Assembly: GCA_002269645.1 (NCBI GenBank)
Contig: NIVC01001433.1
Span: 186,001-250,000 of the forward strand
Source: Macrostomum lignano
Taxonomy: Eukaryota
Direction: 5' to 3'
DNA length: 64,000 nt
Under the pieces are notes generated by a model. That model ran no database searches, was not told the DNA's origin, and worked only from the letters and a program-made list of their open reading frames with translations. How positions within the stretch are numbered: the stretch's first letter is position 1; each line of letters opens with the position of its first letter. Below are positions 24,801 to 55,464 of the stretch, in pieces. Both the position numbers and the translations under genes were made by a program.

Positions 24801-27080
24801 CGTTAGTTCGGACAATAATTAGCACAGCCTCTGACCACCATTCAACTCCGGAGGGCCGGTCACCGGGCTTGCCCGGATACAACCGCCTGGGCACGCCAAG
24901 CACTCTGGTGCGAGACAGATGCGGACTCCGAACACTCGACAGGCACTGTTCGGCTAGGGAAAATGTTGCTATCAAATTCCCAGCCGGAAATGTCCAAACA
25001 GACACGCAGCCGTAGGCGTAACTAGCGGCTAATTTGAAACCGTCCGGCGATAGGGCCATAGAGGTGACGCAATCGGTTCGACTGCGATTGCGCAATAGTA
25101 CAGAGGCTAGTAAACGGCGGGATCGGCCAAGCTCAATCATGTCCTCCTCTAGGGCTAGGGAGGCCTACGAAATGATAGTTATAATTAAGCAAATAAATAA
25201 ATATTCCAGGTGCTTTTGGTTTTTGGCCGCGGCTTAGGGCTCCCACATAGAATGTACATAGTCCTTAAACAACAACCCTAGAATGTACACAGCTTAACAA
25301 ACCTCTACCCCACAATGTACAGTCCCTAACCAACCTTTACCCCAAAATGTACAGTCCCTAACCAACCTCTACCCTTCAATGTACACAGTCCCTAACCAAC
25401 CTCTACCCTTCAATGTACACAGTCCCTAACCAACCTCTACCCTTCAATGTACACAGTCCCTAACCAACCTTTACCCTTCAATGTACACAGTCCCTAACCA
25501 ACCTTTACCCTTCAATGTACACAGTCCCTAACTAATCAACTTCTAGAGCACAATGTGCACAGCCATTAGCCAATTGATTAAATTTTACATTCAATTCGCT
25601 ATCTCACCTTAATAAATGGAAACTCGCTGATCCTACGCCACAACTGAATACCGTGCTGTAGCGGAGCAGACAGGGTAGGACTATGCCGCATAGTACAAGT
25701 GCCAAGAGCCAGAGTGCCTGACACAGAATCGTAGCAGCCGCAAAACACCGGTTGGCCAGCAACTCGGTCGCGTATATTATAAGCGCTTAAACACTGCGGC
25801 GATTCAGTTTGAGGAAACTGTTGCTGTTGTTGCTGCTGCTGCTGCGGCGGCTGTTGCAGATCCAATAGAAACTGCTTTAACATGCCGGATATGGACACTG
25901 TGAAAAGTACAATCACTCCGCCGCTGGTAGAGCCGTCGTCTCCGCCGCCGCCAGATTCTAGCATTAAGAAGGCCAGAGGACAGCCCGACGGATTGTCGGT
26001 CACCTGCGCGGGCGGGGTACCAAATGAATAGTTACGAGTAGTGTATTTCAATCGAACAATTTCAATTTAGGAATAACAACACTTGAAACTCAGAATCCAG
26101 AAATTTCAAACTAAGAATCCCACGACTAATCAGATCAGCTTTCTAAGACTCCATCTCAGCAACTCAGGACTCCCAACTCAGCATCATACGGCTCCATTAT
26201 AGAATCTTGGAATTCCAACTCAGCATCCCAAGACTCCTAACTCAGCATTCCAAGACTTACAACTCAGCATCCCAAGACTCCCATCTCAGCATCCTAAGAC
26301 TCCCAACTCAGCATCCCAAGACTACAACTCAGCATCCCAAGACTACAACTCAGCATCCCAAGACTACAACTCAGCATCCCAAGACTACAACTCAGCATTC
26401 CAAGACTCCCAACTCAACATCATACGGACGGCTTTATCATAGAATCCTGGAATTCCAACTCCGCATCTGATTAAGTCTCAATTTAGAAAAGCCTGTAGAA
26501 ATCCCCTCACCTGTTCAGGCGCCAGTTCGCATAATTTCTGTCCTCGAATGTTAAACACAAGGACGCCACCGTTGCTATTAGCAACGGCAATGCATTGGGA
26601 ATCGGCCGACCAGCTCATCAGTCGCCATTGACAAAACTGATCTGGCGGCGTTGCTATGACAACTAAAGCTTCATCTAGGCCTCTCTTTAAACTATACAGC
26701 TCTAATTGGCGACGTTTTAACAAAGCTAATCGTCGACCGTTCGGCGACACGGCGATAATCCATGGCAGTCTGGTAGCTCTGTGCTCCTCAATCTCCGGCG
26801 GAACTAATTGAGGCGACACGCTCAACCAGAGTTTGTTCATCAACTGGCCGGACAGACTGTCAGCCACTGGCCGAAGCGGCGATTGTTGTCCGAGGCCAGT
26901 GTCGGCCAAATATTCGTCGTAGTCTTCGTCTACTCGACATTCTTTGAGCAGTTTTCTGAAGTAATGCAACGTATCGTCATCGTTGCTAGCGCAGGCGCTT
27001 GAAGAATCAGCAGCTGCTGCAGCAGCGGCCGGAGATACTGGAGAAGACGGCATCAATTCTTCTCGACGCGATGTCTGCAT
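6854..27080 (-). CDS. NBAS: NBAS (neuroblastoma-amplified sequence / Sec39-domain protein), 14 exons, ~2593 aa, with two 1-nt frameshifts as assembled
   Basis: Exons 27080-26511, 26003-25608, 25164-24628, 22914-22213 (acceptor less certain), 21199-21077, 20648-20154, 16543-15264, 14680-14132, 13438-12868, 12475-12061, 10782-10164, 9794-9645, 8744-8020 and 7501-6854. All introns are GT-AG and phase-compatible if one base is added near 13410 and one near 10287. NBAS hallmarks: QWRLMSWSADSQCIAVANSNG, YGEALLLARNYGLDTDLVYQRQW, HWVLHECLHRVP, QRFASDADYRTDTVLGLA, RYSISDWEVCATHL. Confidence 0.93.
7600..7975. repeat. ~37-bp minisatellite, NBAS intron 13
   Basis: Unit CAGCACACTGACATTACAGACTGA(T/C)AGAACATCAAAA. 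Confidence 0.9.
8805..9580. repeat. 31-bp minisatellite x~25, NBAS intron 12
   Basis: Unit AAGGATTGAGCAATCGGTGCGGTAGAGATCA. Confidence 0.95.
9890..10085. repeat. ~32-bp minisatellite x~6, NBAS intron 11
   Basis: Unit CACACCTGTTGTCTATGAGTACACGCTTGTGT alternating with a variant. Confidence 0.9.
10960..12000. repeat. 23-bp minisatellite x~40, NBAS intron 10
   Basis: Unit CCGCCCTCCACTACAGACTCAAT. Confidence 0.95.
13545..13950. repeat. Polypurine (GA-rich) tract, NBAS intron 8
   Basis: About 400 bp made almost only of G/A on the + strand, with recurring GAAAGAGGGTGAG. Confidence 0.85.
14830..15240. repeat. 27-bp minisatellite, NBAS intron 7
   Basis: Unit GAAATCCCAACTAGAGATTCCCCACAG, degenerate toward the left. 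Confidence 0.88.
16934..17128. mobile_element. 195-bp MITE with perfect 18-bp terminal inverted repeats
   Basis: GGGCCGTATGCAGAAAGC (16934-16951) is the exact reverse complement of GCTTTCTGCATACGGCCC (17111-17128). TAGTCCGG is present subterminally in both arms. No clear TSD. Confidence 0.8.
17297..19420 (+). pseudogene. Degraded EnSpm/CACTA (CMC)-type transposase in NBAS intron 6
   Basis: Frameshifted and stop-riddled remnants of family motifs in the expected order: NIDGLHLYKSSSASLWPIL (~18105-18165), FICDAPMRAFIQCIAGHTSTNGCGYC (~18330-18410), FPLDY, FPCEFQRATR, YGPLG..F.FENYLGRLK (~19045-19100). Element ends were not found. Confidence 0.8.
19590..20090. repeat. 24-bp minisatellite x~19, NBAS intron 6
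   Basis: Unit TTGATCATAGAGACACTCCTATTA; it yields the spurious LLLIIETL ORF. Confidence 0.95.
20760..20950 (+). mobile_element. tRNA-derived SINE-like element, NBAS intron 5
   Basis: A-box-like TAGCAAAGTAG, anticodon-loop-like CTCAAGA and B-box GGTTCGATTCC, but no complete cloverleaf. A non-tRNA body follows; the 3' end is uncertain. Confidence 0.6.
21240..22140. repeat. ~43-bp G-rich minisatellite x~20, NBAS intron 4
   Basis: Unit AAGTGGCAACCAACTGAAGGATCAGGGAGGGTGGGAAGGGGCA, plus a slightly longer variant recurring about every third unit. Confidence 0.95.
23030..24510. repeat. 16-bp minisatellite x~90, NBAS intron 3
   Basis: Unit CTGACCTGATCACTCT with periodic variant blocks. Confidence 0.97.
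25270..25530. repeat. 34-bp minisatellite x~7, NBAS intron 2
   Basis: Unit AATGTACACAGTCCCTAACCAACCTCTACCCTTC. Confidence 0.9.
26150..26460. repeat. 21-bp minisatellite, NBAS intron 1
   Basis: Unit CCCAAGACTACAACTCAGCAT. Confidence 0.88.
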
Positions 27081-28085
27081 GTAGCCAGTGGGCCGATATG
27101 TATCGAAAATGTTTAACTAGACTAAGGAAAAATCGCACATACTTATTGAATACGTGTTTAGCTACCCTTAATAAAAATTGCACATCTGCATTAAAAAGTT
27201 TCACTTAGCGAAACTGCCGATATGTATCGAAGCTACATTTCACCTACTTAAAGAAAAAGCCGATATGTATCGAAACTACGTTTTACTTACTTAAAGAAAA
27301 AGCGTCGAAAATATGTCTAATTTTTTTAGGAAGAAGCCGACCGATATGTATCAATAATATGTTCTTCTGGCCAAAGGAAAAGATGGATGTTTCTTTTGTA
27401 CAGGTCTATATTTATTTAAATTACTATTTTTATCCTAATTTAAACTTGAAAGCATAGAATCTAAGGATAGAAAGGGAAGCTACTTCTTAAGGATAGAAGG
27501 TGGTGGTGAATGTTTTTGGTCAATTGCCTGAACAATGAGTTTTCCAATACTATCCTTACTAAACTGCTCAAAATAAATAAAATTAACCAGATACTTGTTG
27601 CACCATAAAAACAGTGATAAAGAAACTTAATTACAGTAAGCACAGACAAACACAAGCATGTTTTATTGTTTTGCCTGTCGGACAATTTGCTGCAGATTGA
27701 ACCGGTTCATTTGAATGCAAAAAGTTACCTATATTCCGGACAGGACTTGTCAAATTATCATTAATTAATAATTAGCAGTACATACAACAGGGCTTCAACA
27801 AAAACTTTACCAACACGAATAGTTGTTAAAATGTTAATAAAACGCGATGACAGGCCTATAAGTTATTGCAAACCAACTACCTAGTAAAAACGCACGCGTT
27901 TTTTTAAAAATGCCTCAAAAAAGATGCTTTTACTACTTATTAAACTACTTTTATTACTAACAGTGTAAGTAGTGCGTTGCGGCAATGAAATTTGTCCACT
28001 TTAATTTCTGTTAAAAAACGAGATTTAAAAAGATTTTATTAACTGGTTGGTCAAAGTTCATGCACAGAGACACGGGCTCGTGCGT

Positions 28086-30999
28086 TCAGATAAGATCGGC
28101 AACGTTCATTGGCATCTCGTCAATCTGGGTTGAGTAGTACTGCTCAATATCTCGCAGAATTTTGATGTCGTCAGTTTTCACAAAGCTAATAGCGACTCCA
28201 CGGCGGCCGAATCGACCAGATCGACCAATTCGATGAATGTAGAGCTCGCGATTATTAGGCAGATCGTAATTAATGACCAGAGACACCTGCTTGACATCGA
28301 TGCCGCGAGCCCACACGTCGGTGGTAATTAACAGGCGGGTAACTGTGGCGCGAAAGTCTTTCATAATTGCTTCGCGCTCCTTCTGCGGCATGTCGCCGTG
28401 CATCATGGAGACTGTGAAGTTCGCCTCCTGCGGGTTGGTGCGTTGCGGTTCGGATTGAGAGGAATTAGCACGCCGATGGGCTAGAGATGGAGTGACAGAC
28501 GACTGATGGACAAAGAGAGACGAAAGTGACAGGCAACTGATGGACAAAAAGATACGGAAGTGACAGGCAACTGATGGACAAAAAGAAACGGAAGTGACAG
28601 ACAACTGATGGACAAAAAGAAACGGAAGTGACAGGCAACTGATGGACAAAAAGAAACGGAAGTGACAGGCAACTGATGGACAAAAAGAAACGGAAGTGAC
28701 AGGCAACTGATGGACAAAAAGAAACGGAAGTGACAGGCAACTGATGGACAAAAAGAAACGGAAGTGACAGGCAATTGATGGACAAAAAGAAACGGAAGTG
28801 ACAGGCAACTGATGGACAAAAAGAAACGGAAGTGACAGGCAACTGATGGACAAAAAGAAACGGAAGTGACAGGCAACTGATGGACAAAAAGAAACGGAAG
28901 TGACAGGCAACTGATGGACAAGAAGAAACGGAAGTGACAGGCAACTGATGGAGGAACATGTGGAAGACAGACAATTGAAGGACAAAGCGTACGAAGTTTC
29001 GGCAGGGCCCAAAGCCCTTTGCAAACTAACTGAGCAAAGCAAAATTAGCAGCCATTCACTTTAACAGCTTACCAACATCTTCTCGGCAAGCCATTCAACC
29101 TTGCGCTTCGTATTGCAAAAGATCACGGCCTGCGAGATAGTCATGGTGCCGTACAGGTCAATAAGCGTGTCGTATTTCCACTCTTCGCGTTCGACGGCAA
29201 CAAAGAATTGTCGAATACCCTCCAGGGTAAGCTCGTCGCGTTTCACCAGGATGCGAACTGGATTGCTCATGAATTTTGATGTCATCTCAAGGATCTCGTG
29301 CGGCAGAGTGGCACTTACGAGGACAACCTAAGCATTGGGGTTAGAGTAAAGTTAAGAATAACAATAAGAATGTACTATTATCTGATTAAAATGGAATTTT
29401 GAGGTGCGAGTGTACATTGACGCTAGACGGAATATGGGGGTTGGGAGGTGTGCATACATTGGGGCTAGACGGAATGGGGTTGGGAGGCGTGTGTACACTG
29501 GGGGTAGACGGAATGGGGTTGGGAGGCGTGTGTACACTGGGGGTAGACGGAATGGGGTTGGGAGGCGTGTGTACATTGGGGCTAGACGGAATGGGGTTGG
29601 GAGGCGTGTGTACACTGGGGGTAGACGGAATGGGGTTGGGAGGCGTGTGTACACTGGGGGTAGACGGAATGGGGTTGGGAGGCGTGTGTACTCGTATGTG
29701 TACATCGGGACTAGGCAAAAGTGTACATATTTTAGCCATATTTCTGTGCACATTTAACCAAAAATTTTCACCTGAGTCCCAGGTGGCAAATAGCGATAGA
29801 CATCGTAAATTTGCTCCTTAAATCCTTTATCAAGCATTTCGTCGGCCTCGTCCAAGATTAGCATTCGAATAGCCCGTGTTCGGAGGTTCCGCCGGCGAAT
29901 CATGTCCAACACGCGACCGGGAGTGCCGGCAACAATGTGCTGGCCGTAGTCCAACTTGCGCATATCCTCGCCAACGTTTGTACCGCCGTAGGAGGCGTGG
30001 CATTGAACGTTCATGTAGTCGCCGATGGCTAGCACCACCTTAACAGGGTTTGAATTTGTTTTGAAAGGCAGTTTTGTGAGCCGCAGAAACTACTTATAGT
30101 CTCTATAAATATCCGCTCCGATACGCATCTTCTAAAACCATAATACGGCTTTATAACCCCACAGATCTCGATTAGTAATCCCACTAAGCATCATTCTCCT
30201 AATCTACAATCCACTCTAAGCCTCATGCTCCTAATCTACAATCCACTCTAAGCCTCGAGCTCCTAATCTACAATCCACTCTAAGCCTCATGCTCCTAATC
30301 TACAATCCACTCTAAGCCTCATGCTCCTAATCTACAATCCACTCTAAGCCTCATGCTCCTAATCTACAATCCACTCTAAGCCTCATGCTCCTAATCTACA
30401 ATCCACTTTAAGCCTCGAGCTCCTAATCTACAATCCACTCCTAATCTACAAGCCTCATTCTGGTAATATATAATCCACTCTAATCCCCCATTCTCTTAAT
30501 CTATAATCCGCTCTAAGACCTATTCCCTTAATCTATAGTACCTATCTCTATTCTCATCTTGTAGATTCACTGACTAATCGTATATATTTTAATAACAGAC
30601 TTGCATATTCAGTACTATGAGCAGCAACCAACAGCATTTGCAATTTACCTTCTGAATCTGCGAGGCCAGCTCTCTAGTAGGCGCCATTATGAGCACCTGA
30701 GTCTCCCTAGTCTGCGTATCGATCACCTGCAGAGCCGAAATGGAGAAAGTAGCCGTTTTACCGGTGCCACTCTGAGCCTGAGCGATAACATCACGGCCGC
30801 TAACAATCTGTTTAATAGCTCTCTGCTGTATAGCCGATGGCCGTTCGAAGCCGTACGCGTAGATACCGCGCAACAGTTCCGGTTTCAGCTTCATATCCTC
30901 GAAGCTAACAGCAATGGTGACATCTTCGGACGTTTCAAATTCGATGTTTTTCATGTCCTCGTCTAAGCCTCCTTCGTCGCTTCGGTGAGCTCGCGCCAT
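28086..30999 (-). CDS. EIF4A3: Eukaryotic initiation factor 4A-III (DDX48, exon junction complex DEAD-box helicase), 4 exons, 404 aa
   Basis: Exons 30999-30649, 30038-29772, 29327-29073 and 28427-28086, all phase 0 GT-AG. Motifs [26 protein letters not shown] and [10 protein letters not shown]. The N-terminal EFETSEDV and C-terminal [13 protein letters not shown] are diagnostic of eIF4A3 rather than eIF4A1/2. Confidence 0.97.
28490..28970. repeat. 34-bp minisatellite x~13, EIF4A3 intron 3
   Basis: Unit GTGACAGGCAACTGATGGACAAAAAGAAACGGAA. Confidence 0.95.
29400..29690. repeat. 39-bp minisatellite x~7, EIF4A3 intron 2
   Basis: Unit GGGGGTAGACGGAATGGGGTTGGGAGGCGTGTGTACACT. Confidence 0.93.
30180..30530. 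repeat. 32-bp minisatellite x~8, EIF4A3 intron 1
   Basis: Unit CTCCTAATCTACAATCCACTCTAAGCCTCATG. Confidence 0.93.
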
Positions 31000-31080
31000 T
31001 TTTTCTCTTGCAATAAACACATGCAACAAATAGATAGATACATGTTGATAACATGTCAATAAATGGATTTACTATCCAAG

Positions 31081-31590
31081 GAGGGCAGGGAAAACCAAGA
31101 CGACAACCACCGTCTGGTGAGGCTATTCATGCCTAGGTCGCAAATCACAACCCATTTTAACAGGTGGCTCCACCAGCAACACCAGCTCCACTGGAGCAGT
31201 TGCACTGACTATAGGCAAACCTGAACCGGGAAGTCTCCGAATATCTGATCTCATTTAACAGAACCAATCTCAGGGAGATGCGCATGGTCCTAACCGGCCA
31301 TGGATTCTTTCAGAGACATATCTCGTCGCAAACTGGTTGCCCTCCCACCGATCCTTTCTGTGGTATAGAAGAGAGGAGACTGCAGAGCATGACGTCACCT
31401 TCAGTACTTTAGAGGATGGACGACCTGACTACCCCACCCCGGACAACATCCGTGACCTTCGTCCGAAATAACGGCCAGATGAGGGTCACCGATGCCTCCT
31501 CTGCAAAGCTCCCGACTACAATCCCGCAATGGGGACTTCGCGGCTTAATCGCGACGCCTGCGCCCCCCCCATTAGTAAGTAAGTAATAAA
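31081..31590 (+). mobile_element. 5'-truncated non-LTR retrotransposon 3' end (LOA/R1/I-like ORF2 C-terminus)
   Basis: Disrupted translation [19 protein letters not shown] ... [12 protein letters not shown] ... CG..EETAEH resembles the C-terminal zinc-knuckle region of LINE ORF2. It ends in a short (TAAG)n tail at about 31573-31586. Confidence 0.65.
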
Positions 31591-31954
31591 ATGTCGCATC
31601 TATAATCATACTACTAAGCTGGGTAACCTCAAGTATACTACGAAAACTACATGTAACTAAAATGTGGCAAAACAAACACAAACAATGATTTGAAATTAAC
31701 TCAAGGTGGTGAAATTTTTCCAACATTTATTTACTGTTTTAAGCAGGCAATACAAGCAATATAGTAAACAGAATATGTAGTTGTAATAGTAATTCTACCA
31801 TTGATAGGACGCCGGAAAAAGAACACCCGGAAAAGCTACAAAAACTCTACAATTTCTAGTTGCTAAATTTTTTAAAAGGATTCCTATCCTAAAACAAAGG
31901 TGTCCACAGTTTAAAGTGTAATTCTATCTAATCGATTACGAAGTTGTCAATAAA

Positions 31955-32170
31955 TCAATAGTGCCAGGGATCTTCTCCTTCTGGCACCTTTCGATTCCTG
32001 TACAGTGCCGTTTGACCTTTAATGTAAGCGAAATGCTGCCTATAGGGCTTGTGCACTACATAATAGTAAAACACTGAGACTCCCACAGATAGCAGCAAAG
32101 GCTTATAAATGCCAGGAATCCGACGCAGAATCATCCTAGGCAGACTGTACTTGCCACCATACTGCACCAT
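31955..32170 (-). CDS. Small 71-aa single-pass membrane protein, possibly a respiratory-chain accessory subunit (COX6C-like)
   Basis: Intact ATG-to-stop ORF with non-repetitive composition: basic N-terminus (LPRMILRRIPG), one hydrophobic segment (PLLLSVGVSVFYYYVV) and a basic tail. The resemblance to COX6C is by eye only. Confidence 0.55.
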   Translation of the reverse strand: MVQYGGKYSLPRMILRRIPGIYKPLLLSVGVSVFYYYVVHKPYRQHFAYIKGQTALYRNRKVPEGEDPWHY

Positions 32171-35100
32171 GCTTGCTTGATGTTGGACTTCAGTCTTCTT
32201 ATTGCTTGCAAGATTGTTTCACTCACTGACTGATGTCAGCATGCAATTAAATGATTTCTTAATTACTTTCAATGCACTTTTATTGGTTCATTTTTCAAGT
32301 TTTTCATTTTTCATTTGTGACCTTAAAAAGAAAACAATAAACCAAAATAAACTGCTAGGAGTTTTAGATTAGTAGTTAGAGTATCTGACTCATGACTGGA
32401 AAGTCAGGGGTTCAATTCTCAACCCACTTAGAATGATTTGTGTTCTTAAGCAAGACACTTAACTCTGCATTGCTTTAGTGTAATAAGTTGTAAAATATGT
32501 ATCAAAATTTGTTTTTTTTGGTAGGTCACAAAACTTGGCCAGTGTAATTTTAGAGACTGCACATGTATATCAATGTAACTTGGGTTTTAAGAAAATATAT
32601 TCCAATGTGTGCAGAACAATCTTTCTAACTAATGACTGGCACCAAATTATAGATTGTCACACAATAGGAAATTCTAGCAAAGCCAGGTTGGATTTGGGAT
32701 TGGAATTATCATTAAGTGCTAATATAAATTTATTGCAAAATAGCCAAGGGCCTTTAAAACTTAAATATTTAAATAGATATTCTATATAGCACCTTAGCCA
32801 ACAAGATCAATACTTGAATCAAATCTTATTTAACAAAAATTTATTCCATTTTTAAACTTTAATTCTAACAATTTCTGTTTCAGTATAAGGATGACTTTAA
32901 ATTTATTTTTTTGCAAAAATAGGTCCAGAGATTAGAATTAATTGGGTTCATAATCTATGGATTTCAATAGCTTGTTTGATATTAAATACTAATAATAAAC
33001 TAGATATTATTGTTACTATGGAGACAAATAGTTACTTATTTATTTATATAGTATATTCATATGCTAGAAGCCTATACAAGTATTGCCAATGTAATATAAC
33101 ATAGGGCCTATTTAATAATATAGTAGCCTATTACGGCTATTATTTCACAATTAGTAATACTTGTATTATATATACCTAATCTACAGTCTAAAAAGTGGCC
33201 TTTATATTAGAAAATTATATAATTTTTTTTAATAATATTCTTGGCATATACTTGGCAAAAATTTAAAATCATGCATTTGTTTATATATAGACAAAGTTGA
33301 TATATAAAAAATAGCACAAGTTTAGGTTTGGCATTTATAAAATAAAGTTACATTTTGATAAAAAATGAAAGAAAACTTTTTTTAAATAAATGGAGAATTA
33401 AATGATAATAATATGCAACTTACTAAAGAAAAAAAAAGTAGGACATAAAATAGAAAATTAAAACTTATAGAAAGAGTAGACTTTATAGTTTAACAAAATA
33501 TATATCATAAAATTGGAAACAAATACAATGTTTTTAAATAAATATCTCTCCAAAAAATATAAGCTATAGTCTAGACTATAATATTTAATATTTTACTATG
33601 TTATTATCTATTCTAATCCATAGTTAGAAAGATAGCTGGCTTTTAAATAGAAAATGTAAGAAAAAATTAGCCTTGGTTTTTGGAATTAGATAGAAAAAAA
33701 TAGGGCAGAATTCAAAGGCTAGGCAAGGTAGGCCCTAAAGCAAGGCAAAGGCAGGTTAGAGCAAGGTAAGGTGTGGATAAGGAGCAAGGTGAGACAAGGC
33801 AAGTAGCTATATAGTCTGGGTTCTTGGGCCATGTAGGATTTTTTAGATTTTTGGCATTAGAGGCTTAAGGCTTAAGTAGGGCCTAGGCCCTATTAAATAG
33901 CAAAAATTGACAATGTTAGGTCCTAATAATAAGTCCTAGACAGTCTTATTCCCACAATAATATAGGGGCTTAGTTTATTGCATACATGTTTAATGTCAAT
34001 GAGCCTTGGAAATATCTATCCTTGAGAATTTGGCTAGTTGCCAATAGGCCTAGCCTACAACCAAAAATAGGCCTAGCCATTGGCAACTGGATTTCTAACT
34101 TTAAAAAACACAGATTTTATTTATAACAAATTAATATTGTACTAGATTAAAATTGCATTAGGCCATACTTGGATTTGGAATGCTATATGCCTAACTCCAA
34201 TACTGTAGACATTGTCATTAGCTTAGCATGAATTGAAAATCTGAAAATTTTTATGGCAGACAAAGTGACCAAATTGCCTAGCAGATAAAATGATTAATAC
34301 TAACGAATATTAGTAGACAATAATATGGCAAACAAAATGTAGTAGGCAAAAATCACTATCAACCCTAGCATAGCACAAGTACTAGGTAGGCCCCCTAAGC
34401 CTAAGGCAACACTGCAAGCTGCAACAGCAAGAGGGTACCAATGTATCATACAATACAACTAAGGGGCAGGACAGAATAAGCAAGGAAGTTTAGATAGGTT
34501 GACATTTCCATATAGGCCAATCTAAAAAAATCTCTAAATAATTTTAATTTATAACTAAAAAATATTTATTTTACCTATGCCAGTAGGTAGGGCCTACACA
34601 ATCAATTTCAGAAAATTTAGGCTGATAGATAATTTACATATATGAATACCAATGTGTGATGTGAGAATTTCTGTCAACAAATTGCTCACTAAGATTTGTT
34701 TACAAGAAATTTTCCTGTCAATATTTGCCTGACAAGCTTTTCCCTGTAATTTTTCATAAAGACAAAATGACACATGTTAGATTAAATTGTTACGGTAGAC
34801 GAAATCGCCACCGGAGATGGCTCTGCTCCCCATAATATTAGCAGACGAAAGTGCGGTGCGGCAGGCAGTGGCACATAAAAAACGTGTAGGCCTAAACAGT
34901 AACAGTAATAAGTATTCGGCGCCTCAGCCATTGATTAGGCTCTTACGTAGGCCTAAACGTCGCCTGCCTGTTGTATAAAAATTGGCCTATTTCTTTTTCT
35001 AAGATTCTTTAAAATTTTAAATGTATAGTTTAACAAACTTAATTTGTAATAACTTTACTAAAAGGTAAATTTATAAAAAAAACTAATAAAAAATTCCTAA

Positions 35101-38100
35101 GTGTACATATTTAGCTTAGAAACACATAGATATCCTGATATTCATATTACAAGGAACTTGAAGCGTACATTTAAATTTTTCGATTTAAGAAAAGTTCAGA
35201 AAAAGGTAGAAACAAAATGACGTCCTTTAGTTAGATGTTGCTCAGACCGTTTTTTTATGATGTAAAGCTAACTATTAAATACAAAGCTAACTGTTCGTCA
35301 TATAACTGCACAATAACCTAGACAGTCTTGTTTCCTTAAATTAACGTGTTTTTTGGGACATAATAAATGTAGGACTAAGGCCTAGCGCGCCTAAGGGCTA
35401 AGGTGTAGTGTAGTGTATGCCTAGCCTATCCAGGCTAGCCCTAGCCTTTCAGTTTAAGCCTTATTAAAAACACAGCCGGGCCAGCCTTACTTTGTAGGCC
35501 CTAACCTTATAGTTTAGTTGACTTACATAAAGAAGTAATTTGACGATGCAGCTTTACATTTCAATTAGGCCTAGGGATTAGAAGCTATCTTGTCTTGTTG
35601 ATCTAAATAGGCAGTGACTATTCGTCTGGTATTGGATGAATAATGTAACTATTATTCGTCTGGTACTGGATAAATAAAACTGAAGTTATTTGTCTGCTAC
35701 TGGCTGAGCAGCCTGAGCTGCGTGAATTTATATGCCACTCTGCGTATCTTTTCTAGCAAGGTATACTAGTTTGATTTTAGAATGTCTTCCTGAAATTCAG
35801 TCAGTACTGAGTTCGAATGTATAGTTATGACTCCACTTTTTTATTGTAACAACTCCAAGTGTTATTGTAATAACTCTTAAGTCCTTACTTTGGCATTTGT
35901 TTATATAGCAGCAAATGTTCCTATTATTTTTTTTGACTATACCATGTATCATGACTAGGTCTACTGTTTACTGTGAAACCAAAACAAACTGATATGTATA
36001 GAAAGAAATATAATAAAGGTAAAAATTATTTAAAACTTTTGGTATTTTGCCTTTGCCTTTGGCCTTAGAAGGGTTTCACCAACTATGATCTGATCTGAGA
36101 AACAGCACTATCTAATCATAATAAATATTTTCTGCTTCTAGCCTAAAAGTGGACTATATAGGCCCCTAGTACTTTTTAGTATTCCCTATATTTTACAAGT
36201 TTTTATTATATAGGCCTATCTACTTCTATACTATGCCAGACAAATAACTTCATTTTTATTTATCTGGTACTAGACAAATAACTTCACTTTTATTTATCTG
36301 GTAGGCCTACTAGGCCTAGATAAATAGTCATTGTCATCTAAATAAGTAAAAAGATATTGCTTCATTTTCTCAAATTTAAATGTAAGCCCATCTAGATTGT
36401 CTTATCTATTTTTCTACTGCCTACTGTCTCTACTGACTATTTATTTAATTCTAGATCTAGAATTAGAATAGATAACCATTTAATAAAGCTTAGGCTAGGG
36501 TTAGCCAAGCCAAGGTTAAGTTAAGTTGTTAAAATAAGATCAGATTGGATGATCTGATCAAAAGTTTGGATACATCATTAATAATTTATTATATTTCAAA
36601 TTTATATATAATTATTGCCTAGGTCAAATGGGTATAGGCCCCCTATCCTTGAACCTAGGCCTAACAATTTTTAATTTGAGATAAATATCTAACAATATTG
36701 GCCTAGTTGTATAGGGGGCCTGGATAGGGATTAATATAGTTTTTATTTTAATTATATTATATTAGGAAATTAGAGTCTATTTGGGTCAATTATTTTGACT
36801 TTAGCAAGTTAGACTATAAGCTATTTCAAGTAAAAAATGACTAAAGCCTAAAGGCTGTAGGCTAAAGGTTTCAACCTACTTTGACAAAAGAATTTTTGGC
36901 AAAGTTAATAATGGCAAAAAATACTTTCTTAATTACCATTTTGTCTAAACGTAGCCATTTTTGCATAAAAATTTATTGATTGATCTAAGCTTTAGCAAAG
37001 AGTTTTGAATTTTTTTATTTTAGAAAAAGTCAAAGTCAAAACAGATAAGCTTTATGAAAACTATTTTATTGTCATATATATTTTTATTTTGTAGCAATTT
37101 TATTAGGGGGCCTATTTTATTTTCACAAACTACAAAATATGCTTAGGTAGTCAATGAATAATTTATTAAAAGCTACAATGCCCAAAGCATTATGTTTGCA
37201 ATTATAAGTTGCCTATATCCTGCCAAACTAGTCACTGTTTTCATTGAAATTTATATCTATTTAAACTACATATTCACTTTTATTAAAGCATTCTTTTGTT
37301 AAAAATTCCTTTGCTATAATGGGCTATACCCAGGCTGAATGAATAAACATTAGTAGTAAAACTAGAAATTAGTTAAAAAGGCAGATTCTAGAAGTTAAAT
37401 ATCCAAGAAGGATAAAAAGGGTAGTTCTATATTTTAGCATATATATTTTTTTTGGTCCTCTGAAGCCTTATTGTAGCCAATGGCCATTATTATAGATAGT
37501 GTCTAATATAGATTAATTTGGTGGTATAGGTGGGGTTTAGCACATTGGTGTGATCTAATATTAGTCTATGATCTAGTCTGGAGGATATCTAATATAGTTT
37601 AGACCTTGGCTATAATAGGTTGTCTACTAAGAGGATAAGGCAATTACCCCTTACATCCCCTTTGGTTATGTCATCAGTAAGTACTATTTATATATTTTAA
37701 ACATGTTATAATAATGTATTCTAATGCTAAAAAGCTACTAATAGTCTAAGATATGGCTAGAATATTTCATTTATTATTTGAATCAGTATAGTGTTACAAT
37801 GTGCTTATATTGTAATAAGTATATATTTTGACTTGTTATTCTATATAATGTATATAGATAATAAATATACTTATTTAGGCAAATGGGTTTAATTATTACA
37901 AATAATATTCTAACTTAATAATATGACTTTTTAATAGTGAAATATCAACAATTGTTTATTAATATATCACTTTTTTTCTAAAAATTCATAATGTTCATTT
38001 GACAAAAAAGAATTGCTTTTTTAAAATTGTTTTTTATATTAAAATATTTTTAATCCAAGACTTTAATCACTTAAACAATGAACTAGCAGATATTTAGTGC

Positions 38101-38640
38101 TAGTCTTTAGATAGCTTAAACATATTATTATATTTCTATTTTAATATGGTTATATTTCATATTGAGAACTGATCAAACTGCTTTTCTAGCTAGCCTTAAC
38201 TGAGAATCTTGCCTTAAAAAATTTTAGCTAGTTTGGATTCTTATATTTATGAATTTTAGGATGTAAAAATATTTTTGTAGCTCATAGCTGCTTATTTACT
38301 TGATATTGTTTTTTTAATATACTTTTTATACCACTATTATTTAGTAATTGTATAACAAAGACAATAATTAGCATTTATAAGATAGAGATGATTGAAATTA
38401 GAAAAAAACATGCTAGACAACAAACTTTGTTAAGCAATGGTTAACCTATGATACAAAAAGCCTGTGCTTCTTCATTGTGCTGTTTCTTTGCTGTTGAGTA
38501 GGTGTAATAAATGCTGGTGTAAATACTAGACTCATTTTATGGTTGCACAATTTATGGTTGTTCAATTAAAAATAGCAATTTGCTTATGCTTCTGGTCAGG
38601 CAATATGATTATTAGTGCCCATGCACCCACCCTGACAACT
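32130..38640. other. AT-rich, CpG-erased intergenic domain of decayed repeats
   Basis: By eye there are 2 CpG in 32130-34790 and 1 in 35830-38640, while GpC/GG/CC persist. It is rich in CTAG/TAGG/CCTA and has no long ORFs. Confidence 0.85.
32372..32470 (+). mobile_element. Decayed tRNA-derived SINE head
   Basis: GTAGTTAGAGTATCTGACTCATGACTGGAAAGTCAGGGGTTCAATTCTCAACCC aligns to the SINE head at 20770-20822, followed by a CAAGACACTTAAC SINE-body-like motif. Confidence 0.55.
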
Positions 38641-38908
38641 TTTCAGCATTCGAGTTGAAAAAAAGACTACTAAAATCTGGTGTTTGCTCAAAACACCCAA
38701 ACACCCTTTCCTTTGTCTGTGTAGTCTTGTGCATTGATTCCCTGACACTTTCAGCTCATTGTTGCTTTCTATATTTGTCTTGGTTACTGACGTTCTGTCA
38801 ATTTTTTATAGTATTTTATTTACCAGTCTGAGTTGCTTACTGTAATCTGTATCAAAATTTCATAGCTGTGATATCGCCCTATACACACTACTCAGTTGTC
38901 AGTAAGCC

Positions 38909-39919
38909 ATGTCGGATGATTACTACGCAGTATTGGAATTGACTCGCTCAGCCACCGAGGGCGATATTCGCAAGGCTTACAGGCGCATGGCCTTGCGCTG
39001 GCATCCAGATAAGAATCAGGACAACAAAGAGGAGGCCCATCTCAAGTTTAAAGAGATTAGCGAAGCCTACGAAGTCCTGTCCGATCCGAATAAGCGCCAA
39101 ATCTACGATGTCTATGGCAAAGCCGGTCTGGAGACTGACAATGGTAGCGGCGGCGGCGGCCGGAGTCACAGTCGGCATCACGCGGGCTTTCATCACGATT
39201 TTCATAGCTTTGTATTCCGCGATCCTCAGGAAGTGTTTCGCGAATTCTTTGGCAACAGGGATCCGTTCTCCGACTTCATGTTTATCGATCCGTTTGCCGC
39301 TTTTGGTAGGCAGCAACATTACCAACAACAGCATCAGCAGCAGCAACAGCAACAAGTTGGCAATCTATTTCAAAGCAATTTTATCGGATTCCCAACAATG
39401 CAGATGCACGATCCGTTTTTTTCGTTTGGCCAATTCGGCGGCTTGGGCAGCCACGCGGCTGTCGGCGGCGGCGGCGCCGCTCAGTTCATGAGTTTCAGCT
39501 CGTCAGGCCTGGGGCCCAGCACTCAGTTTCGGTCATCGTCCACATCTACTAGGGTAGTTAATGGCCGGCAGATTGTCACTAAGAAAGTTGTAGAGAATGG
39601 CGTGGAAACTGTCACAGTGACTGAGAATGGTCGAGTAGTGTCGAAGACTGTCAACGGTCAGGCTCAGTCTATTGAAGGCCCGTCTGGCGCCAACGCCGCT
39701 GCATCGTCTTCGTCGTCTTACGGCGCCGGTCACCATGGCTACGGTTCTCGAGCTGGCGGCGCGGCCCCGGCGCCAAGGATTTCGTCGGCTCATTCGCTGA
39801 GCGGCGGCGGCGGCCGTCCTGGCAGCAGCGGCAGCGGTGGCGGCGTCAACAAGCGCTACAGCCACCAGCCGACTGCGGATCAACAGAAACGCCAGAAGAG
39901 ACGCGAAGATCGTAAATGA
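38909..39919 (+). CDS. DNAJB6: DnaJ homolog subfamily B member 6 (MRJ)-like Hsp40, 336 aa, intronless CDS
   Basis: J domain with HPD (RWHPDKN), G/F-rich region (FRDPQEVFREFFG), and S/T-rich C-terminal domain STSTRVVNGRQIVTKKVVENG. Confidence 0.93.
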   Translation: MSDDYYAVLELTRSATEGDIRKAYRRMALRWHPDKNQDNKEEAHLKFKEISEAYEVLSDPNKRQIYDVYGKAGLETDNGSGGGGRSHSRHHAGFHHDFHSFVFRDPQEVFREFFGNRDPFSDFMFIDPFAAFGRQQHYQQQHQQQQQQQVGNLFQSNFIGFPTMQMHDPFFSFGQFGGLGSHAAVGGGGAAQFMSFSSSGLGPSTQFRSSSTSTRVVNGRQIVTKKVVENGVETVTVTENGRVVSKTVNGQAQSIEGPSGANAAASSSSSYGAGHHGYGSRAGGAAPAPRISSAHSLSGGGGRPGSSGSGGGVNKRYSHQPTADQQKRQKRREDRK

Positions 39920-40084
39920 AAAATAAATAAATAAAAACCTCGTGTATTAATAGATATTCGACTTAAATGACTTGTAGCTTGAATTTTACTGATGTAAATG
40001 CGCTAATTTTGTTTGTTTTGCTTTCTAAAATTTTAATAATAAACAAAAATTTAGTAACAAAGTGTAACCGCTTTAGTACCTAGC

Positions 40085-40439
40085 CGGGTCATTGTGAAGC
40101 TATCCGGCCCGCTCAGGGCTTGTGTCTCTTCTCAGCTATCTTCTCTTCTCTCTCTTCTTTCCCCTCTCCCCTCTCCTCTTCTCTCCCCTCTCCCCTCTTA
40201 TTCTCTCCTCTCTGTGCCCTCTACCCTCTTTTCTCTTTCCTCTCTTCTCCCTCTCCCTTCTCTCCCTCTCTTCTCTATCTGTTTTCCTCTTCCCTCTGCC
40301 CTGTCTACCCTCTTCTCTTTTTTATCTTTTCTCTAATCCCATTCCCCGCCTCTCCTCTCTTCTCTCATTTTTCGTCTTCCATTCCCTTTCATTTCCACTC
40401 TCATCTGGCCCTTGAGGTAATAAAGGTTTCCGACCCCTG
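40085..40439. mobile_element. Possible hAT-type MITE remnant containing a CT-rich tract
   Basis: CCGGCCCGC ... TCTGGCCC ... GGTTTCCGACCCCTG end resembles CAGGGGTCGG-type hAT MITEs. The left TIR is not recognisable. Confidence 0.35.
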
Positions 40440-41394
40440 CTATAAGATCTTGTATTAATAAAAAATCTGTTTGTAGTTATAAAGATTATACTACTAACTT
40501 GAGCAGTAGCATAACAGCACAATGGGCCTATTTTAGTAATTCTACTACTGTAGTGTCCGTTCATCGGGGACTAATTTCGAACAATATAATTTTATTTGTT
40601 TTGGTATCCTCGGAGACTTATTTGTGTTATTTAATTGTCGAAAAAATCTCCCGTCCCTACTTGTTTGTTTATTTATTAGTTTCCCGTCTTTAACTAAATG
40701 GATGTAGCTTTAGGCACACAAATTTGTAACTGATAATTAATTGGTAAATGCGGTACATGTATGATGAGCCATCTGTTAGATTTATCCAGTGGCTTGAACA
40801 GGATAAGTAGGCATCTAAATGCCACTTTTGTTATATTTTAGTTTTGCCTGCTCATTTGCTTCATTTTATGATTGGAAACTGTGTTAAAATTGTGGCAGAG
40901 AAGGCCCTGCCGTTTATATTATATTTAATATTTAGCTTTCTCCAAAGGTGCGAATTTGCGAAAGCCTCTGGCCCCCTCCCTCTTCTGCTTATATCTGACT
41001 CAAGTCATTTGTGTTTGCTAATCGATGTCTTTGTCAGAAGAATTTCTCTTTTTTGGCCTTCTCTCTGCACCATTATTAAGCAAAATTTTCCTGTCCTGTT
41101 TTTTCTCCAATGCCTATGCTGTCTTCTCCGAGCTGACTTCTGTCCTAAATGTGCAAGCCTGCTATACACACACGAAATATTGAATTTATTCTGTTGCTTT
41201 TTGTATTTGAATTTGTCAGTTCAACTACCAACAAAATTTAATTTTTAGCTGACAATGGCGAGAGGTGCGAGATCTGACTGTGGGTCTCTGGCAAACTTGC
41301 TTGTTAGCTAAACTCCGAATTTCATGCCCTTGATGCTAATTATGAACCGTTTTTGCCTTGTTAATTTATTTACTCTTGGTTTAGATAGGAAACA

Positions 41395-41891: not shown

Positions 41892-44800
41892 ATGGAAAGT
41901 TTGGTAAAAGTGCGTCAGATTGAGCTGCCTAGCGACACGGCAAACGCTGGCAGTTTCAAGTTTTTCATGAATCGGTACAAAACGCCTGTCGCCGGAAAAA
42001 ATGGAAACAAAGATCAGCTGGATTCTGGCTTATTTTGGGTTAATGCACCTGACAGTGGAGGTGCAAATCAACTTGCACCATTGTATCGCTCATTGGAGTT
42101 CGAATCCTTGTTTTGCCAGATGTATAAAGGCGAAAAAATGCCCTTAACAGTTGAACAAGCCCGGATTTTGCTAGCTGTGCCAATACACAAGCGATACGAT
42201 TTTTGTGTTTCGAGTAATTTTCAATTGGCCCAACGCTTCCAAGTTGGTAGCATCGTGTCTGTTCGCGATCCCAGTTTTGTTGAGAAGCTAGGTTTGTACT
42301 CTCTTTTTGAGTCTCTGCAAGTACTTAAGGTTTCCTTTGCAATAGGAAAACCGGGTAATTTTTCGCTCAGAGTTTGAGTCATTCATTTCGAGGCACGAAA
42401 TATTGGCCTTGGAGTTGTCTTATGATTCACAGCCATTATGGCCGACCTCCAAGCTACAGACTACATGCCTGACGATTTAGAAAGTCAAAGAACCGCTGTA
42501 CAGCCTGTGTGAGCGTGTGTTTGATTGCGTGCTTGCGTTAAGGATTGGTACGCTAGGTTGTGTGTGCTCATGAGTCAGCGGAGTGCTCGTCTACAATATA
42601 GCGTTCTTTTTACTCCAAATCATTTTGGTTGCCCTTGAAAAATCCGAATTTTTAACTGGCTTACATTAATTTGATTTTTTAGAGCCGATAAAATCGTTAA
42701 AGTGTCAAGTTCGGTTCAAAGGTGTTCTGCCTAGCAGGACAAAACCGAAAGACCCAGACGGTCTCTATTTTGGTTTTGTCAGCTGCGATCCAAAAGTAGA
42801 TGACGGCCAGCCATTGATAATATCCGTGTTGGCTCTTTCTGACACTCAAAACCTGTTGAAAGTGCGCCCAGAGGAAGCTCGCGATCGCCGATTGATTCTA
42901 GCGGACGCTCGCTGGTTGGATCCGGTTCAAGATTGCCCAGCTGACCAGCTGTTTAACATTAACGATCGGGTAGTGCTGCAGTTGGACGCCAGACAGAATG
43001 AGTACAGGCGCGGCCTGATCAAATGGCTGGGTAGACTGGATGCAAACGGACCAAAACATCTGGCTGGCGTGGAGTTTGACCATCGAGTTCCCAATTCGTC
43101 ATGTTGGTTGGGCAATCGTTGTCTGTTTGAAGGCAAACCCGAGTGTTGTCTCATTGTTGAAGAGGCCCATTTGCAGCGAGAGGAAGACTTTGATCGTAAA
43201 ATGGCAGGTTGGTTGAGTTGCCCTCGATTTTGCCTAGGATTGAATGACTTTGATGAATTTAGTATTTCGTAAGTTAAATCTATAGAATTGAGTTTCTGCT
43301 AGTATTTGTAGGATTAGTAGTGCTGTTTGTTAATGCTTTTTTGACAGACCAAAGCTGTACTGTATAAATGCTGTATTTGAGAATACAATGCTGTAGTTGA
43401 TAATACAGAGCTGTACAAATGCTTTACTTAAGAATGAAATGCTGTAAAAATGCTGTACTTGATAATGCAAGGCTGTACAACTGCTGTACTGCTCATATTT
43501 TGTAGAGAGCCGCGCCAATGCTGGCCGAATTTATCAGCCGCCTGCTCAGCCTCCCAACTCATCTGATCCACGTCGCGACGAGGCGCAGGCACTGATGGAG
43601 AGTAAAGGCATTCGAATCGACTTGCATGTCAATTTAACATTCCTGGACAAGGTCGGCATGGTTATGTGGTTCGGTTTCATTCCAAACCAAACAGATCTGG
43701 TTGTTGGCGTTGCTCTTGATGACAACGAAGGAGTTGAACGCGGAGGCCACGGGTTCGTGCCTTCTAGCCAAGTGCGAGCCGTGCATCCAGATGTTCAGCC
43801 TGATCTGTGGTTCACCTTTCTGGATGCCATTGAGCCAGCGCAAAATGCCAATAGTCAGGCCGATCGTCCCAGAGGAGCCGAGGCTCTGCCTCACCAATTT
43901 GGCAGTGGCGACTTCGAAACCATTGCGGGTCCAACTGAGCCTCGAATTCGCCTAGAAGACTTGGACAATTTGGTCGGTCGCAATCGCGGTGTCCAGGGAC
44001 ATCACAACTCTTGTTATCTTGACTCAACGCTGTTCGCCATGTTTGCCACCGTTGACGCATTCGATGGCGTCCTAGAGCGGCCTGGTCAGGCTAAAGACAT
44101 CGATAATTATGAAGAAATCAAGAATACTTTGCGCGAAGGTATTGTAAACTGTTTGAGAAGGTGAGCGACACTCCTACCCTGACCTACAGTTGTATATTGT
44201 ATTTGTGTTTTCATATATTTCTACCACTGTCAAATGCTTTTAGAAACAAGTTTGTCAGCGCTGGACAAGTTCTGAAGCTGCGAAAATGTCTTAACGATCT
44301 CGACATCATTCCAGGAATGATGGGCGAAGAAAAAGGTGATTTAATATAAGACTAGTCTACTTTAATCCTCAAACTGGGTCTCTACTCTCCCAGATCCCTA
44401 GTCTGGGTCCCTACTGTTTACCAGATCTCTATAGGCTGGGTCCCTACTCCTTCTCAGATCCCTAGGCTGAGTCCCTACTCTCCCATATCCCCAGACTAAG
44501 TCCCTACTCTCCCAGATCCCTAGGCTGGGTCCCTACTCTCTCATCCATAGGGACTCAGGATTGAGGCTGAGTTCCTACTCTCCCAGATCCCTACGCTGGG
44601 TCCCTACTCCTCAGGATTGAGGCTGAGTTCCTACTCTCCCAGATCCCTAGGCTGAGTTCCTACGCTCCCAGATCCCTAGGCTGAGTCCCTACTCTCCCTG
44701 ATCTCCTGGCTAAGTCCCTACTCTCCCAGATCCTCAGGCTAAGTCCCTACTCTCCCAGATCCCCAGTAAACATAAGATACCTTTTTATCCTCATTTCGTT

Positions 44801-47510: not shown

Positions 47511-48039
47511 AGTAATATTGAAAACCATATACTTCGTTTTAAACGTTTTCGTCTTCTTTGAGATTCAACATCGTTTTTATTTATCAAATTTGCGATTCTC
47601 TCTTTTCTCAGTAAATAATATAATTTGTAAATATTTTTAATAAGAGGAATGCGAAAGCTATTAAAACCAATAACGGAGGATTAAACTCGGAGAAAAACGG
47701 TTCAACTTTCAAAACAAATAAGAGTCTACAATACGAGACAGACGCTTGTATAGAACTTAACTTTAATAATAATTTTAAGTCTGTTGTTACTCCAGAATCG
47801 GCATAAAATACTTTTATATACTACTTGCAGTAGTAAAAAAAGTGGTAGCTTAAGCGCCGGAAGCATATAATGTATACACATACAACGTTTGTATTGGACC
47901 AAATTGATTAATTTTTAATTAAATGAGTTTTCTTTTCATATATTTCTGGTTGGTGATCTGATGTGTACCATTTATTCCACTGTAATTGCATATTTCTACG
48001 CCGTCTCACCCAGTGATTAAACGATTTAATGCCATCATC

Positions 48040-48977
48040 CAGGGGCGTCGCCACCGGGGGGACATGCTAATGCTTTGTCATGCCAATGCTCCACCCCATC
48101 TTGTGACCCGTTATGGAAATCAATAATTTTGCTTACGGGCTCCAAAGCATAGCGCCTGCGGCACCAAAATGAGTGCCTTCGGCGCCAAAATGAATGTCTG
48201 TGGCGCCAAAATGAATGTCTGTGGTGCCAAAATAAGTGACTGTGGCGCCAAAATGAGTGACTGTGGCGCCAAAATGAGTGACTGTGGTGCCAAAATAAGT
48301 GACTGTGGCGCCAAAATGAGTGACTGTGGCACCAAAATGAGTGACTGTGGCACCATAATGAGTGACTGTGGCGCCAAAATGAGTGACTGTGGCACCAAAA
48401 TGAGTGACTGTGGCGCCAAAATGAGTGACTGTGGCACCAAAATGAGTGACTGTGGCGCCAAAATAAGTGACTGTGGCACCAAAATGAGTGACTGTGGCAC
48501 CAAAATGAGTGACTGTGGCGCCAAAATGAGTGACTGTGGCGCCAAAATGAGTGACTGTGGCGCCAAAATGAGTGACTGTGGCGCAAAATAAGTGACTGTG
48601 GCGCAAAAATGAGTGACTGTGGCACCAAAATGAGTGACTGTGGCGCCAAAATAAGTGACTGTGGCGCCAAAATGAGTGACTGTGGCACCAAAATGAGTGA
48701 CTGTGGCGCCAAAATAAGTGACTGTGGCACCAAAATGAGTGACTGTGGCACCAAAATGAGTGACTGTGGCGCCAAAATAAGTGACTGTGGCACCAAAATG
48801 AGTGACTGTGGCGCCAAAATGAGTGACTACTGCGCCAGAATGAGTGACTGTGGCATCAAAATGAGCGCTGACAACACCAATTCTCAAAATAATGTACATG
48901 TAGTTATTTAGTCATGTACATGCAGAATTCTTGGCTTTGTCCCCTTCCCCACCATAAAATCCATGGCGACGCCTCCG
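48040..48977. mobile_element. hAT-type non-autonomous element carrying a 21-bp minisatellite (x~33)
   Basis: TIRs CAGGGGCGTCGCCA / TGGCGACGCCTCCG (12/14); 8-bp TSD CCATCATC / TCATCATC (7/8); internal unit AAAATGAGTGACTGTGGCGCC at 48160-48870. Confidence 0.78.
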
Positions 48978-54990: not shown

Positions 54991-55464
54991 CAGTAAACAT
55001 AAGATACCTTTTTATCCTCATGTCGTTTCAACCCAACCCGCAGACCCCGAGGAGTTCATCAACCTGCTGCTGGACCACGCGCTCCGTCACGAGCCGTTCA
55101 TCAAACTGAGCACTGGGCAGAGCTCCCATGTGCTGCAGCTGTTTCTTGATCGGGCCGATTTGCCTTTCGAACAGCAGAAGCAGCAACAGCAGGTATGTGA
55201 TCTTTGAACGATAAGAAGATTATAAAAATCTCAGCGAATTCATTATTTTATGTGTATACCGGATATGCAGCAAAAAACTTTCATATAAGTTTTTATTAAT
55301 AATCTATTGGCTAAAGGACTAGCAATCACACCGATATTAAACAAGCCTTCTATATAATTGTTTTTTTGACATAAGAAATTTGTGAAACTAAAATAGCTGT
55401 CGCATTCCCTGATATCATCGCTTAGGGATCAGCTTCCCGGCTTTTGAGCAACTCCCTCATCAGC

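Follow-up and report, generated by a model that had tools for sequence, protein, structure and literature searches.

In this work we analysed a 64-kb stretch of the genome of Macrostomum lignano (assembly GCA_002269645.1, contig NIVC01001433.1), hereafter called the window, together with pieces of paralogous contigs of the same assembly, about 110 kb in all. The window contains a 6.5-kb domain that is nearly free of CpG, inside the 7.8-kb spacer that separates the divergently transcribed housekeeping genes eIF4A3 and DnaJ; two erased blocks enclose an island that has kept its CpGs. An earlier reading of the letters of this stretch (the sequence-only reading) had rightly taken it for animal DNA, and had proposed that the domain results either from hypermutation of the repeat-induced point mutation (RIP) type or from methylation. 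Our observations suggest that CpG methylation of an old, AT-rich spacer of transposon origin probably left the domain as its footprint, and that no new RIP-like mutator was at work. We regard the domain as a further instance of a known process, in a lineage whose methylation pattern appears to be unreported; the claim of a RIP-like mutator acting at this locus in an animal is not supported.

Extent, specificity and age of the CpG loss

The two blocks together contain 3 CpG where about 113 are expected, an observed/expected ratio (o/e) of 0.03. The sequence-only reading had counted about three CpGs near 33134, 34304 and 36950, against an expectation of roughly 100; these positions proved exact (the first two in block 1, the third in block 2), and the erasure is stronger than had been estimated. 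Two of the survivors are recent and specific to the window: 33134 lies within a 9-bp indel and 34304 within a complex indel, both are missing from the second copy of the locus described below and 34304 from the third copy as well, so that the ancestral CpG count was even nearer to zero. Only 36950 is common to the window and the second copy. The abrupt boundaries reported earlier could be placed exactly (Table 1); both are sharp and lie upstream of the flanking genes, the left edge about 1.1 kb from the start of eIF4A3 and the right edge 258 bp from the ATG of DnaJ.

The loss is specific to CpG. In the erased blocks GpC has an o/e of 1.7 and CC/GG of 1.4, and C and G outside CpG are still at 28–30%. 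The persistence of GpC and GGCC and the abundance of CTAG and TAGGCC, also remarked upon at first, are borne out by the counts: GGCC is found 25 times where 2.3 are expected, TAGGCC 13 times (0.3 expected), TAGGCCTA 6 times (0.04 expected) and CTAG 41 times (14.3 expected). The sequence-only reading had allowed that AT content alone might explain the depletion. AT-rich non-tandem controls from the same genome have a CpG o/e of 0.69–0.81, and a young insertion of 31% GC within the domain reaches 1.43, so AT content does not account for the loss. The remaining long CpG-free stretches of the window are all tandem arrays with a repeat unit devoid of CG; the domain is complex sequence, with neither periodicity nor internal repeats.

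The eIF4A3–DnaJ locus is present in three copies, on three contigs, with identical flanking genes and with the erased/island/erased pattern in all of them. The second copy is on NIVC01002689.1 (pieces L002 and L004) and the third on the 877-kb contig NIVC01000051.1 (pieces L003 and L006). The M. lignano genome is partly polyploid, and three copies would fit. Since three contigs carry the same flanking genes, chimerism, misassembly and contamination are excluded. L002 is 99.4% identical to the window over 31900–39000 (43 substitutions in 6889 aligned sites, 0.62%). The parts of the third copy that are homologous to the erased blocks hold 4 CpG for 47.5 expected, and its homologue of the island 19 for 26.5. 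As the pattern is common to all copies, erasure and island both predate the triplication. Further copies of segments of the domain were sought in the window and in L003, and none was found besides the homologous locus.

The third copy diverges from the window by 2–3% near the genes and by 9.2% in the centre (34000–36370), with many indels; its spacer is 15.4 kb long, and window positions 33575–34001 and 32904–33056, in block 1, have no counterpart in it. Over a longer range, divergence between the window and L003/L006 is about 0.3% in 18246–25245, 1–2% in 25251–32775, about 9% in 34000–36370 and 1–3% in 37959–41000. The unevenness suggests that near the genes the paralogous loci may have exchanged sequence, by gene conversion or recombination.

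Insertions younger than the triplication and lying inside the domain have a CpG o/e of 0.7–1.4, with the exception of one of 4.6 kb (0.34), which is partly CT-rich and of low complexity. The latter was found in the third copy at about window position 32775; that copy also has insertions of 2.5 kb (at about 32849) and 1.0 kb (at about 33361). These two and a third private insertion of 1.9 kb (L006 7191–9066) have a CpG o/e of 0.7–0.9. A Penelope-like element truncated at its 5' end makes up the 1.9-kb insertion, with a 431-amino-acid open reading frame (ORF) that holds partial RVT_1 and GIY-YIG domains; it has inverted terminal repeats of about 200 bp and a target duplication of about 20 bp, and it sits exactly at a 1.6-kb deletion, homologous to window 36367–37958. 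L002 alone carries an insertion of 858 bp (L002 4681–5538, a gap in the window between 34449 and 34457), with 31% GC and 30 CpG for 20.9 expected (o/e 1.43). This insertion is bordered by a perfect 8-bp target duplication, CATACAAT, and has the subterminal repeats TTTCGTCTGCC and GGCAGACGAAA; it is non-autonomous, and hAT-like by the length of its duplication. Its CpG richness means that an AT-rich element recently arrived in the domain was not erased.

Table 1. Positions of the domain, its parts and its immediate neighbours in the window
Feature	Position	Strand	Remarks
CpG-erased block 1	32125..34792		2 CpG for 59.5 expected (32130–34790); GC 30.0%; AT-rich, non-coding, non-tandem
CpG-retaining island, about 1 kb	34793..35815		28 CpG for 34.5 expected (34791–35829), o/e 0.81; in all three copies
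CpG-erased block 2	35816..38650		1 CpG for 53.5 expected (35830–38640); GC 27.6%
34-bp unit carrying TTCGTCTGG, 2.5 copies	35619..35703	+	left arm of the inverted repeat; CpG intact in 2 of 3
Same 34-bp unit, inverted, 1.9 copies	36237..36303	-	arm in block 2; all CpGs replaced: CAGACAAATAA (CG>CA), TTATTTATCTGG (CG>TA)
tRNA-derived segment like a short interspersed element (SINE)	32355..32520	+	head with GGTTCAATTC, then CTTAAGCAAGACACTTAACTCTGCATTGC; read directly from the sequence
19 palindromes TA-G(2-5)-C(2-5)-TA, e.g. TAGGCCTA, TAGGGCCTA, TAGGCCCCCTA	33102..37114		island included; absent from the window's other 57 kb
Examples of these palindromes	34045, 34068, 34887, 34948, 35566, 36159, 36211, 36302, 36311, 36656, 37104		as listed in the window
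Left flank, CpG present	31060..32124		31060–31650 broken reading frame
eIF4A3-like DEAD-box helicase gene (P0121)	28086..30999	-	409 amino acids; left neighbour; exon CpG o/e 1.2–1.3
DnaJ (DNAJB6-like) gene, single exon	38909..39919	+	336 amino acids; right neighbour; CpG o/e 1.18

Methylation and the alternatives closest to it

We infer that methylation was the cause of the CpG loss, and propose the following course of events. The spacer would have been assembled from decayed transposon debris, old, AT-rich and non-coding. Before the triplication its CpGs would have been methylated in the germline by DNMT1/DNMT3 and then lost by spontaneous deamination of 5-methylcytosine (5mC), which gives CG>TG/CA, and ordinary AT-biased drift would later have made TA from some of the products. 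Sequence that arrived afterwards would have kept a normal CpG content, namely the 1-kb island, the insertion in L002, which resembles a miniature inverted-repeat transposable element (MITE), and the Penelope-like element and others in the third copy. The sharp boundaries would then be joints between old erased DNA and DNA that is younger or was never methylated, for example because it is close to a gene. According to three papers, all of which cite Wasik 2015, both DNMT1 and DNMT3 persist in M. lignano and its 5mC content is low; no genomic pattern of its methylation is reported in them (PMC11292947, PMC9246332, PMC10658182).

Traces of the lost CpGs are few but appear consistent with CG>TG/CA followed by drift. 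Position 32159 is CG in the other two copies and CA in the window, a polarised CG>CA change. The motifs CAGACGAAA and TTCGTCTG are repeated in the domain and are of the sort found at the ends of MITE-like insertions; their decayed copies in the erased blocks read CAGACAAA, TTTGTCTG, CAGATAAA and TTTATCTG, and the CpG has become TG/CA in three and TA in two of about five independent decayed copies. The o/e of CpA/TpG rises from 0.86 in the island to 1.05 in the erased blocks, which amounts to about 106 extra CpA/TpG for some 90–110 missing CpG. The SINE-like segment in block 1, whose CTTAAGCAAGACACTTAACTCTGCATTGC part resembles the domain of CORE-SINE/MIR elements, is a hint that the erased DNA consists of the remains of old transposons. 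In several respects the domain is like the methylated bulk DNA of vertebrates with its CpG islands, like the DNA of invertebrates that methylate their transposons, and like that of the sponge Amphimedon: the loss affects one dinucleotide, GpC is kept, the products may in part be TG/CA, the shift to CpG-normal DNA near genes is sharp, a CpG-normal island is embedded, and the host has DNMT1 and DNMT3.

Several observations weigh against a methylation footprint. An o/e of 0.03 is much lower than that of typical methylated animal DNA (about 0.2 in vertebrates), and would require a very high rate of CpG decay or a very long time. Unlike in the methylated genomes just mentioned, the loss affects only a single old spacer of the DNA sampled, CpG being at a normal level in gene bodies, introns and young repeats as well as in other AT-rich DNA; the housekeeping gene bodies in particular show no CpG depletion, and the methylation of spacers and transposons only that this implies is atypical for an invertebrate. 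The 5mC content reported for adults is low, the frequency of such blocks is judged from about 110 kb of genome, and methylation at the locus is deduced here from sequence alone. Compared with AT-rich controls (CpA/TpG o/e 1.04–1.09) the blocks have no excess of CpA/TpG and have instead about 110 TpA in excess; as TpA reaches 1.15 in the island, a high TpA is native to this type of sequence. No clean insertion boundary was found for the island, the best candidate for an 8-bp target duplication, ATTGTTAC / ATTGTAAC, matching at 7 of 8 positions, which is within chance and was not used. The island also has the same motif style as the erased blocks (TAG o/e 1.55, GGC 3.1), and an inverted-repeat pair straddles the boundary between island and block 2 (arms I1 and I2, with 45 nt at 89% and 37 nt at 86% complementarity, about 540 bp apart), which would also fit a position-dependent process. 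Finally, a transposon with GG...CC ends and TA duplications, the proposed source of the palindromes described below, was not found in the 110 kb sampled.

In another reading the domain would still be active: the blocks would be methylated in the germline today and new CpGs quickly removed, the 1-kb island being kept unmethylated in the manner of a CpG island. This is a possibility to which we give limited weight. In its favour, the island matches its flanks in style and dates back to the triplication, the CpGs of the inverted repeat are present in the island arm and replaced by TG, CA or TA in the block-2 arm, the recent origin of two of the window's three surviving CpGs puts the ancestral state nearer to zero, and the CpGs of the island evolve like unmethylated DNA: 4 of 32 CpG sites differ between the window and the third copy, for 34 of 216 other G/C sites. 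Against it, the island is no better conserved than its neighbours: it has 6.3% substitutions, as the flanks do, and has suffered large deletions in the third copy, which argues against a protected regulatory island bound by some factor and in favour of a later arrival. Its repeats CAGACGAAA and TTCGTCTGG resemble the ends of a polymorphic MITE-like insertion. The island is presumably younger than the erased DNA and not protected from erasure. In addition, the third-copy insertions within the domain have kept their CpGs, and new CpGs have appeared in the erased parts at about the neutral rate (2 for about 3.6 expected, a test of low power). New CpGs in the erased blocks at first seemed too few (2/181 against 37/931, p = 0.07), but this deficit vanished once the mixed polarity of the control class was allowed for. 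CpG sites of the flanks are not hypermutable between the window and the third copy (13 of 966, for 57 of 3033 other G/C sites); an apparent hypermutability between the window and L002 (4/98 against 39/6791, p = 0.003) is only about threefold when compared with non-CpG G/C sites, and we did not rely on it.

The methylation footprint can also be given a bolder form, which we put forward as a speculation: the blocks would record a methylation system that targets only old spacer and transposon DNA, spares gene bodies and is nearly complete, and which may still be active around an unmethylated island, while a TA-specific process would sow GGCC palindromes densely over the same DNA. The domain matters mainly because the methylation patterns of free-living flatworms are unknown, M. 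lignano being a model species that keeps both DNMT1 and DNMT3. A nearly CpG-free spacer beside CpG-normal genes amounts to a prediction of where germline methylation acts or has acted, in old spacer and transposon DNA and not in gene bodies, and existing bisulfite or long-read data could test it directly. If true, near-complete methylation restricted to spacers would be unlike the canonical gene-body mosaic of invertebrates, in what is the only flatworm lineage known to have kept both DNMT1 and DNMT3.

It is improbable that the DNA was free of CpG from the start, whether as foreign or horizontally transferred DNA, as a product of misassembly, or as decayed CpG-free minisatellite arrays. The window is indeed rich in CpG-free tandem arrays, up to 1 kb long, and the TAGGCC style of the domain is found nowhere else in the DNA sampled. 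However, the three contigs place the domain between the same two host genes, no periodicity or internal repeat is left in it, it contains decayed transposon debris of the host type (the SINE-like segment and the MITE-like motifs), and a sequence that had diverged past recognition would have regained CpGs unless these were specifically removed.

GGCC palindromes and the case for a RIP-like process

The sequence-only reading had favoured a locus-targeted mutagenesis that also hits cytosines outside CpG, so that CG becomes TA and CTAG and TAGGCCTA are derived from CCGG and CGGGCCCG by a second hit. We now consider such a process very unlikely. It would account for the TA found in about two of the five decayed motif copies, for one difference of CTGG to CTAG between the arms of the inverted repeat, and for a surplus of TpA, relative to the AT-rich controls, that is close to the number of missing CpGs. 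The enrichment in TpA held in part: its o/e of 1.03 in the erased blocks is above that of the rest of the window (about 0.7) and of the AT-rich controls (0.84–0.90), but it is at expectation, and below the value of the island. The CpG-retaining island thus has the highest TpA of all, and it carries the same motifs, palindromes of the TAGGCCTA type, next to intact CpGs; ACGTAGGCCTAAACGTCGCC is an example, and the sequence-only reading had itself noted a native occurrence of such a motif in the island. Palindromes that adjoin intact CpGs are not products of CpG decay.

The history of the motifs leads to the same conclusion. Among 26 indels of 4–60 bp that distinguish the window from the third copy, nine carry the TA-GnCn-TA motif, with private events in both lineages. 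Two cases are exact: at 35268 the window reads AAAGC-TA-AC and L006 AAAGC-TA-GGCC-TA-AC, and at 36159 the window reads TA-GGCCCC-TA and L006 TA; the other seven are less clean. As the motif is gained or lost as a small indel at TA, it is neither a mutated CCGG or CGGGCCCG nor a product of CG>TA, and the derivation proposed earlier does not stand. The comparison of the copies thus shows that the excess of GGCC, TAGG and CTAG is carried by indels and independent of the loss of CpG.

These indels would correspond to the insertion of short GGCC-cored palindromes at TA dinucleotides (TA -> TA-GGCC-TA). One hypothesis is that the palindromes are excision footprints of a cut-and-paste transposon that targets TA and has 5'-GG...CC-3' ends. 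Excision of Tc1/mariner-type elements leaves the TA duplication and a few terminal bases from each end, in the form of a short palindrome such as TACATGTA for Tc1. The palindromes of the domain are like such footprints in their TA-XX-X'X'-TA structure, in being insertions of 6–8 bp exactly at TA that are polymorphic between copies, and in the variable number of retained bases. They are unlike them in that the runs of G or C reach five nucleotides, where the canonical number is 2–3, in their unusually high density (19 in 4 kb), and in that no parent element was found in the about 110 kb sampled. When we scanned for TA-flanked GG...CC inverted repeats, the matches were the long inverted terminal repeats of the Penelope-like element and a minisatellite with an inverted unit. 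The GGCC of TAGGCCTA was also considered as the terminal inverted repeat of a MITE; pairs of GGCC sites are alike only in GGCCTA, and their mean similarity equals that of a random control. The excess of TAGGCCTA, carried by indels and footprint-like, may point to an undescribed transposon family that targets TA.

The composition of the blocks and the comparison of the copies argue in the same direction. A sequence affected by RIP has a (CpA+TpG)/(ApC+GpT) ratio of about 1.03 or less, a TpA/ApT ratio above about 0.89 and a composite index above 0. In the erased blocks the first ratio is 1.29 (1.39 and 1.19 for the individual blocks; 1.15–1.26 in controls), so that the substrates of RIP are not depleted, and the composite index is negative (-0.2). 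TpA/ApT amounts to 1.09, but as unmutated controls of this genome already lie at 0.92–1.02, this product index is uninformative here. The sequence-only reading had staked its proposal beforehand on a bias to C>T and G>A in the substitutions; between the window and the third copy the erased parts show 17 C>T plus G>A for 16 T>C plus A>G, and there are about 1.3 transitions per transversion. The genes of the triplicated locus have remained intact and rich in CpG (exon o/e 1.0–1.34), and a 6.1-kb duplicate found in the window shares 99.4% identity with its partner, with 6 substitutions in the 5.4 kb outside arrays. We thus see in these sequences no sign of a cytosine mutator triggered by duplication or currently active. 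Of the two mechanisms put forward at the start, the methylation-driven one is the best supported, as a classical CpG-specific decay, whereas RIP-like mutagenesis is contradicted by the RIP indices and the symmetric spectrum.

The domain does resemble the products of fungal RIP (RID and DIM-2 in Neurospora) and of the CpG-targeted RIP-like hypermutation reported for transposons of Pucciniomycotina, in which AT-rich, CpG-poor, sharply bounded blocks derived from repeats also lie beside normal genes. Unlike in these systems, CpA and TpG are undepleted, the composite index is negative, duplicates are unmutated, there is no bias to C>T, and TpA is at expectation. A CpG-specific loss by a route other than 5mC deamination, such as selective removal of CpG from a transcribed non-coding RNA or from a spacer that produces Piwi-interacting RNAs, is likewise hardly credible, since the domain is no slower to evolve than the non-coding DNA around it (2–9% divergence against 1–3%), with many indels, and selection on 110 separate sites is implausible under these circumstances.

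Neighbouring genes, duplications and tandem repeats

The flanking genes and their promoters have a CpG o/e of about 1.0–1.3, and the exons of eIF4A3, DnaJ and NBAS (28086–30999, 38909–39919 and 15260–16561) of 1.0–1.34. The exons of these three genes thus bear no trace of gene-body methylation in their sequence, an unusual situation for an invertebrate in which DNMT1 and DNMT3 are both retained. The domain itself has no coding signal, as stop codons are at the density expected from composition: they make up 8.1–8.6% of codons (two frames reported, one per strand) for 8.1% expected, with 175–187 stop codons per frame. ARAGORN found no tRNA, and an Rfam scan of 31000–40000 gave only a chance match below threshold.

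Directly upstream of the eIF4A3 start, the broken reading frame at 31060–31650 (L002 1260–1800) is CpG-rich and contains CPPTDPFC...EETAEHDV. We take it, from the motif, to resemble the zinc-knuckle region at the C-terminus of ORF2 of a retrotransposon without long terminal repeats; a homology search with this fragment, which is like a long interspersed element, gave zero matches.

The 6.1-kb duplicate is part of a tandem segmental duplication of about that length (46116–52254 and 57859–64000), the two copies being 11.7 kb apart. The preceding 3 kb are also duplicated (43369–46826 and 53358–58085); this duplication is older and more diverged, with 90–96% identity.

Introns and spacers throughout the window are packed with minisatellite arrays with units of 15–60 bp (80 rows in the output of Tandem Repeats Finder), for instance at 2243–2966, 8809–9586, 10963–12001, 21294–22138, 23029–24511 and 55447–56613, and the lengths of the arrays differ among the three paralogous loci. 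About 300 bp downstream of a minisatellite with a 54-bp unit (46152–46826 and 57409–58570) lies a single partial unit in inverted orientation, AGAGATAGGCCGCCTCTCCTCC (47110–47160 and 58855–58905); together they may form a foldback-type element with internal tandem repeats.

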